From: Perkinsus chesapeaki ATCC PRA-425
Lineage: Eukaryota > Protista > Perkinsozoa
Reading direction: 5' to 3'
Length of the DNA: 64,000 nt
NCBI GenBank assembly: GCA_013115145.1
Contig: JAAPAO010000123.1
Coordinates: forward strand, 5,135-69,134
Part shown: positions 5,501-6,939 of the stretch, piece by piece
Layout of the letters: each line of letters starts with the position of its first letter
Position numbering within the stretch: the stretch's first letter is position 1
Notes under the pieces: generated by a model
Databases searched by the model: none
Told to the model about the DNA's origin: nothing
What the model saw: only the letters and a program-made list of their open reading frames with translations
Position numbers and translations under genes: made by a program

Positions 5501-6804
5501 AAATATTGGAATTATTAAAAGCATATCCATTGCTTAAGCCATGCAGCGTCGAACCGACGTGTCTCACAAGTCCTGTCTACCTGTTCCTGAATAGCAGCAA
5601 AAATTGGCTTGAAGACATCAGTGTCATAGTTGGAGGTCTTCCCAGTAAGTGCCTGACACCAGCATCACTGACATACCTCCAAGCGTATCCTTCCTACTGC
5701 GCAGATTCGTTCAAAGCCCATGCCAGTATCAACGCAAGGGTGAGGTAGCCTGGTGAGGGTGCCATCATTCTCGCGATTGTACTGCATGAACACCAAGTTC
5801 CAGATCTCAATGACGGTCGGGTCGTCCTGGAGGGAGGGGATATGCAGGGAGAGATGATGCTGATGCTTACCATATTAACTAGGGCCGACGCATCGCGACC
5901 ACCGACGTTATCGTAGTGTATCTCACTGCAGGGGCCACACGGACCAGTATCACCTACACGGCAGAAGCTAGGTCCCAAAGGCCTACTACCCAACAAGGGC
6001 TTACCCATCTCCCAAAAGTTCTCTTTCATGCCGAAGGGGATGACATGATGAGGTGGTAAGAATCTTTATAAAATATTCACAACAAGGAGAATGGTAACGG
6101 TTATTACTTCAACCACAGATCACGTGCTTCGGTATCAGCCGGAACCTCAGGCTCCTTCGGGTCACCACCGTAATAGGTGGCATAGAGGCGTGCAGGGTCA
6201 AGACCGAAACTGAAGTCGGTAATAATGGCTCAATGATAAAGGGAGGGCCTACACTTCGGTGAGGAGCTCCCAGGCCCATGGGATCTGCTCAGCCTTGAAG
6301 AAGTCACCGAACGACCAATTGCCGAGCATCTCGAAAAACGTGTGATGGTAGGTATCTTTCCCGACCTGCATCGATGACCGATGTGACTTCCTCCCTACCC
6401 CAGTGCTATTACATCATCGAGATCGTTATGCTTTCCACCGGCCCTGATGCACTTTTGAGTGTTAGTGGCACGCTTTACTCCATAGAAGGGATGATTCTTA
6501 TCAAGCTGACCAAGGAAAACTGGCTTGAACTGGTTCATACCTAAGGACGACGAATCGACCTATTTTGAAGCTTGCATGCTCTAAGCTATTCCCCGAAGAT
6601 ATTACCAGCATTGATGAATAAGAGCGTAGGGTCGTTATGTGGGACCACGGGGCTCGATCTGATGAAGGTAGCTCCCTTTTTCTCAACAAAGAAGTTGATA
6701 AAGGCGTCCCGAACAACATTGGGATCCGACAATCGTGGGTCGATTGGCATAGGAGATGAGCAGCAACGAAGACGACGTGTAGTCTGTAAAAATGATTGCC
6801 GCAT
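2509..6804 (-). CDS. AARS: Alanyl-tRNA synthetase (multi-exon), with an optional N-terminal targeting extension
   Basis: Motifs VRDAFINFF...[70 protein letters not shown]. The C-terminus ends ...[11 protein letters not shown] with TAA at 2509-2511. In-frame ATGs at 6804 and 6750. Confidence 0.97.
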
Positions 6805-6939
6805 AAACTGAGCATCAGCTCGAGCTACTGCCAGTCACCCATCCCCGCCCACCGCAGTCCACGGGCACGGCAATGGTAAATCGATTATCATGGCGAGCGC
6901 GATCGACGTAGCATGTGTGACGTTCTGGAACTGGGATCG

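Follow-up and report, generated by a model that had tools for sequence, protein, structure and literature searches.

In Arabidopsis, alanyl-tRNA synthetase (AlaRS) is the classic case of one gene serving the cytosol and the mitochondrion from two AUG codons (Mireau 1996, PMC161156, as cited in PMC7049704), and the AlaRS genes of Cryptococcus and Neurospora are 'DualAUG' genes (PMC7049704). The AlaRS gene of Perkinsus chesapeaki ATCC PRA-425 was analyzed here in a window of 64,000 nt (the whole stretch of DNA studied; contig JAAPAO010000123.1, NCBI GenBank assembly GCA_013115145.1, positions 5,135 to 69,134 of the forward strand). All coordinates below are window positions. The gene lies on the minus strand and has two start codons in the same frame, an upstream one (ATG1) and a downstream one (ATG2), separated by a short extension (Table 1). 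This two-AUG architecture belongs to a well-known kind, since the Arabidopsis and fungal AlaRS genes share the layout. The preferred reading, with a probability of about 40%, is an ordinary dual-AUG AlaRS gene of the Arabidopsis or fungal kind, in which ATG2 would start the cytosolic enzyme, ATG1 would add a short mitochondrial presequence, and the two products would be split mainly by the choice of start codon. On present evidence, the locus is a plausible but ordinary two-AUG synthetase gene.

Like the Perkinsus gene, Arabidopsis thaliana ALATS (At1g50200-type) has two in-frame Met codons, and the downstream Met of plant AlaRS falls in the same alignment column as that of Perkinsus, is followed by Pro, and is preceded by an inter-AUG peptide that is basic and hydroxylated. 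The plant presequence is 48 aa long and the Perkinsus extension 18 aa. Targeting and the use of both AUGs have been demonstrated for the plant gene and are putative for the Perkinsus gene. Unlike Arabidopsis, Perkinsus can trans-splice, which is a possible extra layer of control. The fungal DualAUG genes likewise combine, in a single gene, an upstream AUG, a targeting peptide (a candidate one in Perkinsus), and a downstream in-frame AUG. Leaky scanning partitions their products, and in some of these genes transcription that begins between the two AUGs contributes (PMC7049704). In the fungal genes, a weak upstream Kozak context is paired with a strong downstream one, whereas both Perkinsus AUGs have a pyrimidine at −3 (T for ATG1, C for ATG2) and C at +4.

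Two further systems were the premises of an initial annotation of this locus, which had read the 5' end as an alternative trans-splicing switch for dual targeting. The isoleucyl-tRNA synthetase (IleRS) of Trypanosoma brucei is indeed dual-targeted by alternative trans-splicing (PMC3273800). As in Perkinsus AlaRS, the organism trans-splices, one acceptor (a candidate one in Perkinsus) lies before AUG1 and another between the AUGs, and the long form carries a presequence (a putative one in Perkinsus). In T. brucei, both variants and both localizations were shown experimentally and every mRNA is trans-spliced, whereas the Perkinsus acceptors were read from the sequence and the outer one is weak. 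The other premise, that apicomplexan AlaRS is dual-localized, is also correct, but the compartments are the cytosol and the apicoplast, and the mechanism is presumed to be alternative translation initiation (PMC4828885). The AlaRS of the related myzozoan Plasmodium falciparum (PF3D7_1367700) is single-copy and reaches its two compartments via alternative N-termini (PMC4828885); it enters the apicoplast by a bipartite leader, whereas the Perkinsus extension has no signal-peptide core. Perkinsus itself trans-splices, as documented in P. marinus as well as in P. chesapeaki (PMC3101222). Partial spliced leaders (SLs) were found on 14.7% of P. marinus expressed sequence tag clusters, so that the process exists, which is not proof that every mRNA receives a leader (PMC2868825).

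The AlaRS gene and its conserved cytosolic start

The hand-checked gene model extends over 2509..6804 on the minus strand in 25 exons, ends with a TAA stop codon at 2511-2509, and gives a product of 983 aa if translation begins at ATG1 and of 965 aa if it begins at ATG2. All 24 introns are GT-AG introns, 22 of them with a length of 41-65 nt. The remaining two are at 5440-5580 (141 nt, very AT-rich) and 3654-3808 (155 nt), both on the minus strand, and an Rfam scan of these two introns gave no known RNA family. Exon 1 alone matched Pfam PF01411 (tRNA-synt_2c, N-terminal catalytic domain) with 35.9 bits against a cut-off of 30.3, and the domain begins at residue 31 of the long form, that is, 12 residues after ATG2. 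A tblastn search with AlaRS P0110 was colinear along the gene, with P0110 residues 55-985 spread over the 25 exons, including the editing and C-terminal regions. Plant cytosolic-type AlaRS showed 50-51% identity to the window product over ~960 aa using blastp. The gene is a eukaryote/cytosolic-type class II alanyl-tRNA synthetase, and its naming as AlaRS in the initial annotation is borne out by the PF01411 match and the tblastn colinearity.

RNA evidence was taken from contigs of two small public 5-Mb runs, X1 and X2, which were regarded as RNA because their contigs are spliced. These contigs skip introns 1, 2, 4, 6, and 7 at their GT..AG ends, and loose ends at 5954/6003 fit intron 5; the gene is therefore transcribed and spliced. 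The spliced contigs reach up to 6642 and none lies over 6643-7600, i.e., the 5' end of the gene is outside their coverage.

By its position, ATG2 is the canonical cytosolic start. In alignment A5, the Met of ATG2 shares its column with the second Met of a 1003-aa Arabidopsis lyrata AlaRS (P0166), which has its 48-aa presequence ahead of the aligned Met, and with the first Met of a 955-aa plant short form (P0163). Pro directly follows the aligned Met in all three. For AlaRS of congeners, a word search with exon 1 and a full HMMER scan of 1.84 billion representatives gave no match above ~78% identity, the matches being to the conserved core only. Two profile searches seeded with P0110 and the window exons returned no Perkinsus protein, the best full-length identity in a local BLAST against all 392 fetched proteins was 51%, and residues 1-30 of the long form were without a match in a metagenome scan. 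An AlaRS from Perkinsus was thus absent from the results of the word, HMMER, profile, and metagenome searches alike.

Table 1. Features at the 5' end of the AlaRS gene and up to the divergent neighbor (window coordinates)
Feature	Position	Strand	Remarks
ATG1, upstream in-frame start	6802..6804	minus	Context CAGTTTATGC; −3 T, +4 C
ATG2, canonical cytosolic start	6748..6750	minus	Context TCTCCTATGC; −3 C, +4 C; 54 nt 3' of ATG1, in frame
18-codon extension, candidate short mitochondrial presequence	6751..6804	minus	From translation
AlaRS exon 1 if begun at ATG1	6606..6804	minus	Followed by 65-nt intron 1 (6605-6541); joint seen in an X2 contig
Outer AG (GCTCAG/TTTATG), weak candidate acceptor	6808..6809	minus	3 nt 5' of ATG1
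Inner candidate acceptor, TCATTTTTACAG	6784..6795	minus	AG at 6785-6784; sole AG between the ATGs; 33 nt 5' of ATG2
Out-of-frame upstream ATG	6813..6815	minus	104-codon open reading frame (6815-6501); overlaps both AlaRS starts in unspliced RNA
Alternative: candidate 45-nt cis intron in the 5' leader, GTAGCT...TTACAG	6784..6828	minus	Predicted; donor 3.7, 88th percentile
Alternative: candidate 45-nt frame-preserving intron, GTGGGC...GCTCAG	6808..6852	minus	Predicted; donor 5.6, 94.5th percentile; weak acceptor
First ATG of the divergent neighbor (open reading frame 6913-7701)	6913..6915	plus	108 nt from ATG1; open reading frame without Pfam match

The extension and the mature 5' end

The coordinates and letters on which the initial annotation had built (AG at 6809-6808, ATG1 at 6804, CAG ending at 6784, and ATG2 at 6750) were all confirmed on the minus strand. 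Between ATG1 and ATG2, there is no in-frame stop codon and, in any of the frames, no ATG, and the ATG1 frame is open upstream only to a TGA at 6837-6835. The extension peptide contains four Arg, three Ser, two Thr, and no Asp or Glu, with a charge of +4. For comparison, every ATG in the window was treated as a mock start (n = 2208). An in-frame upstream ATG 8-45 codons away, with no stop between, was present for 24% of the mock starts; when the peptide was in addition acid-free with ≥4 Lys/Arg and ≥4 Ser/Thr, the proportion was 1.2%. The composition of the extension peptide is unusual, and the earlier description of it as Arg-rich and acid-free holds, its basic, acid-free make-up being beyond chance. 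In the first 35 residues, no hydrophobic signal-peptide core was found (top 9-residue Kyte-Doolittle mean, 0.34), so that a bipartite plastid leader is not supported, and neither is the plastid option that had been offered for the long form. A plastid lacking a genome would have no need of a synthetase.

Candidate acceptors were scored with a matrix built from the 24 intron acceptors of the AlaRS gene (leave-one-out median for true acceptors, 5.0 bits) and ranked among the 8894 AGs in the window; since the matrix describes cis-splicing, the scores are only a proxy for Perkinsus trans-splicing. The inner AG, which follows a T5 tract, scored 6.2 bits (96.5th percentile) and is the best acceptor-like site of the whole 5' region. 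The outer AG scored 1.1 bits (69th percentile) and has no pyrimidine tract. Of the two acceptors proposed initially, the inner one thus resembles a good acceptor, while the outer one is poor by the standard of the gene's own introns. At the AG density of the window, ~3.75 AGs are expected per 54 nt, and one was observed between the ATGs; from this density, the chance of a site as good as the inner AG in 54 nt is roughly 12%. The two acceptors on their own are not statistically compelling.

The sequence upstream of ATG1 constrains the mature 5' end. Four ATGs are present on the AlaRS strand within 110 nt upstream of ATG1 (at 6914, 6891, 6842, and 6815). Because the open reading frame (ORF) of the ATG at 6815 overlaps both AlaRS starts, this ATG should be absent from the mature mRNA, and a productive mRNA using ATG1 would begin or be trimmed downstream of 6813. 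If the SL were added at 6808, the leader would consist of the 22-nt SL plus 3 nt and all four upstream ATGs would be removed; the published 22-nt Perkinsus SL (sequence in PMC9399869) contains no ATG, as checked by eye. A transcription start at 6812-6805 would also suit the use of ATG1, with a very short leader promoting leaky scanning to ATG2.

Two cis introns may be proposed as alternatives. The candidate intron 6828-6784 would delete ATG1 and the ATG at 6815, and its 45 nt fits the usual 41-65 nt of the gene, but the first exon would either have to include the ATG at 6842 or consist of just a few bases. The candidate intron 6852-6808, likewise of a length usual for the gene, would drop the in-frame TGA and link the ATG at 6891 (MIIDLPLPCPWTA) to F-MRQSF..., so that the extension would have 32 residues. 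Its acceptor, however, is the weak one, and the start that it calls for lies almost within the neighboring ORF. A relic of the SL upstream of ATG1 was also considered and rejected, with no match at ≤3 mismatches anywhere in the window and a best local alignment score that 45% of random chunks also attain. An Rfam scan of the AlaRS 5' region gave no match, and the RNA fold z-score of this region was −1.65.

Competing readings of the 5' end

In the preferred reading, ATG2 starts the 965-aa cytosolic enzyme, as the alignment shows, and ATG1 would add the 18 basic, hydroxylated, acid-free residues, most likely a mitochondrial presequence, to give a 983-aa organellar isoform; the mitochondrial role is proposed because of the composition and the precedent of dual-AUG synthetases. 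The mature 5' end would have to lie within a few bases of ATG1, because of the out-of-frame ATG 11 nt upstream; it could be set either by the SL being added at AG 6808 or by transcription starting nearby. Which of the two proteins is made would depend mainly on the start codon chosen on a single mRNA. Some scanning ribosomes could pass over ATG1, since it has a pyrimidine at −3, would be cap-proximal, and is followed by no other AUG before ATG2. A second class of mRNA, with its 5' end at 6783, may contribute to the cytosolic enzyme but is not required.

Several results weigh against a dual-AUG gene with a functional presequence. Under a coding-versus-intron codon model, the 17 extension codons gave a log-likelihood ratio of −2.4, compared with a mean of 7.05 (sd 3.7) for in-frame AlaRS windows, and the synonymous-only score of the extension was below that of 99.5% of in-frame AlaRS windows. 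The G+C content at third codon positions (GC3) was 28% in the extension, compared with 60% elsewhere in the gene. The highest hydrophobic moment over 11 residues was 0.58, a value reached by 30% of same-residue shuffles, i.e., the amphipathicity is not beyond what the composition gives. Eighteen residues are short for a presequence, and with a pyrimidine at −3 of both ATGs, the usual pattern of a weak and then a strong context is absent. Apicomplexan mitochondria contain hardly any synthetases and are thought to take up tRNAs that are already charged (PMC4828885), which makes a mitochondrial AlaRS less likely a priori in a lineage related to them. The codon test has little power near the 5' end, because the 17 codons directly following ATG2, whose coding status is certain, likewise scored low (−0.019, compared with a mean of 0.100). 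Overall, a translated and functional extension is given a probability of a little over one half.

It is quite possible, though somewhat less likely than the preferred reading, that the extension is never translated, that ATG2 is the sole start of a single cytosolic AlaRS, and that the basic peptide is a chance reading of leader or outron. The mature mRNA would then begin downstream of ATG1, whether the SL is added at the inner AG 6784, the 45-nt leader intron 6828-6784 is removed, or transcription starts after 6802. The strength of the inner acceptor beside the weakness of the outer one, the typical length of the stretch from GT 6828 to AG 6784, the non-coding appearance of codon usage and GC3, the ordinary amphipathicity, the example of apicomplexan mitochondria that manage without local aminoacylation (PMC4828885), and the frequency of in-frame upstream ATGs among the mock starts are all in favor of an untranslated extension. 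It would nevertheless leave the acid-free, Arg/Ser/Thr-rich composition as a 1.2% chance event, its leader-intron version carries the requirement on the first exon described above, and the loss of power of the codon test at 5' ends takes weight from its codon argument. The switch proposed initially, in which SL addition at 6808 keeps ATG1 and gives an organellar isoform while addition at 6784 removes ATG1 and gives the cytosolic one, as in T. brucei IleRS, is unlikely. It predicts transcripts with the SL end ...GGCTCAAG joined to TTTATGCGG (6808) and to ACTACACG (6784). AGs are present both upstream of AUG1 and between AUG1 and AUG2, the inner one strongly acceptor-like with its T5 tract; T. 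brucei IleRS is a proven example of the mechanism (PMC3273800), SL trans-splicing has been described in Perkinsus, with P. chesapeaki among the species (PMC3101222), and trimming at 6808 would clear the leader of upstream ATGs. On the other hand, the outer AG is weak and without a pyrimidine tract, an acceptor-like AG arises by chance in 54 nt at ~12%, trans-splicing of every Perkinsus mRNA is not established (PMC2868825), and leaky scanning would account for two isoforms with no need of a second acceptor. A plastid version of the switch is in addition unsupported, the extension having no signal-peptide core. The RNA contigs stop at 6642, short of both candidate SL junctions.

Even more doubtful is the reading that all AlaRS starts at ATG1, the 18 residues being a permanent N-terminal addition or a weak and ambiguous signal with which some of the enzyme stays in the cytosol. 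If the mRNA is trimmed at 6808, its first AUG would be that of ATG1, and dual localization is known to arise from presequences that are ambiguous or inefficient. Against this, the conserved cytosolic N-terminus coincides exactly with ATG2, the context of ATG1 is poor and its position would be cap-proximal, and the extension has atypical codon usage.

Should the long form be real, imported tRNAs would be aminoacylated within the mitochondria of Perkinsus, unlike in apicomplexans, and this would help to date the loss of local charging in myzozoans. A choice made by alternative SL acceptors would give trans-splicing a regulatory role in the dinoflagellate/perkinsid lineage. A mitochondrion/cytosol switch of Perkinsus AlaRS via the acceptors at 6808 and 6784, improbable as it is, would be the first alternative-trans-splicing dual targeting outside kinetoplastids and would be evidence that perkinsid mitochondria charge imported tRNAs themselves.

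Sequence variants, annotation, and neighboring genes

Two versions of AlaRS exons (5890-5954 and 6411-6515, minus strand) were present in X1, one identical to the window and the other with differences at 4 of 105 bases in one exon and at 5 of 65 in another. X2 contained a diverged version of the AlaRS exons only, with ~92-96% identity to the window. AlaRS is expressed from two diverged alleles/haplotypes, the second haplotype being ~4-5% diverged, or from two strains. In a large protein collection (lengths 36-115, 177-562, and 557-1772 aa), no protein matching this AlaRS gene was found. A kinase ORF 55 kb from AlaRS on the same contig is on record as a product. The annotated AlaRS model of the assembly may be missing, split, or fused. 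By exact-product look-up, the products of two ORFs near AlaRS were not on record.

AlaRS and the ORF beginning at 6913 are arranged head to head (6805-6915), with their first ATGs 108 nt apart. On the plus strand, a TAG ends 1 nt before the ATG of the 6913 ORF, much as the CAG of AlaRS lies 3 nt ahead of ATG1, a possible hint that leader acceptors sit directly at start codons in this compact genome. The product from the first ATG of another ORF (16422-17819, plus strand) is not on record as an annotated protein, and any annotated model thus differs; this ORF ends in a Mei2-like RRM segment (...VMFRNIPNRF...GYAFINF...). The genes ≤10 kb from AlaRS are all intron-rich.

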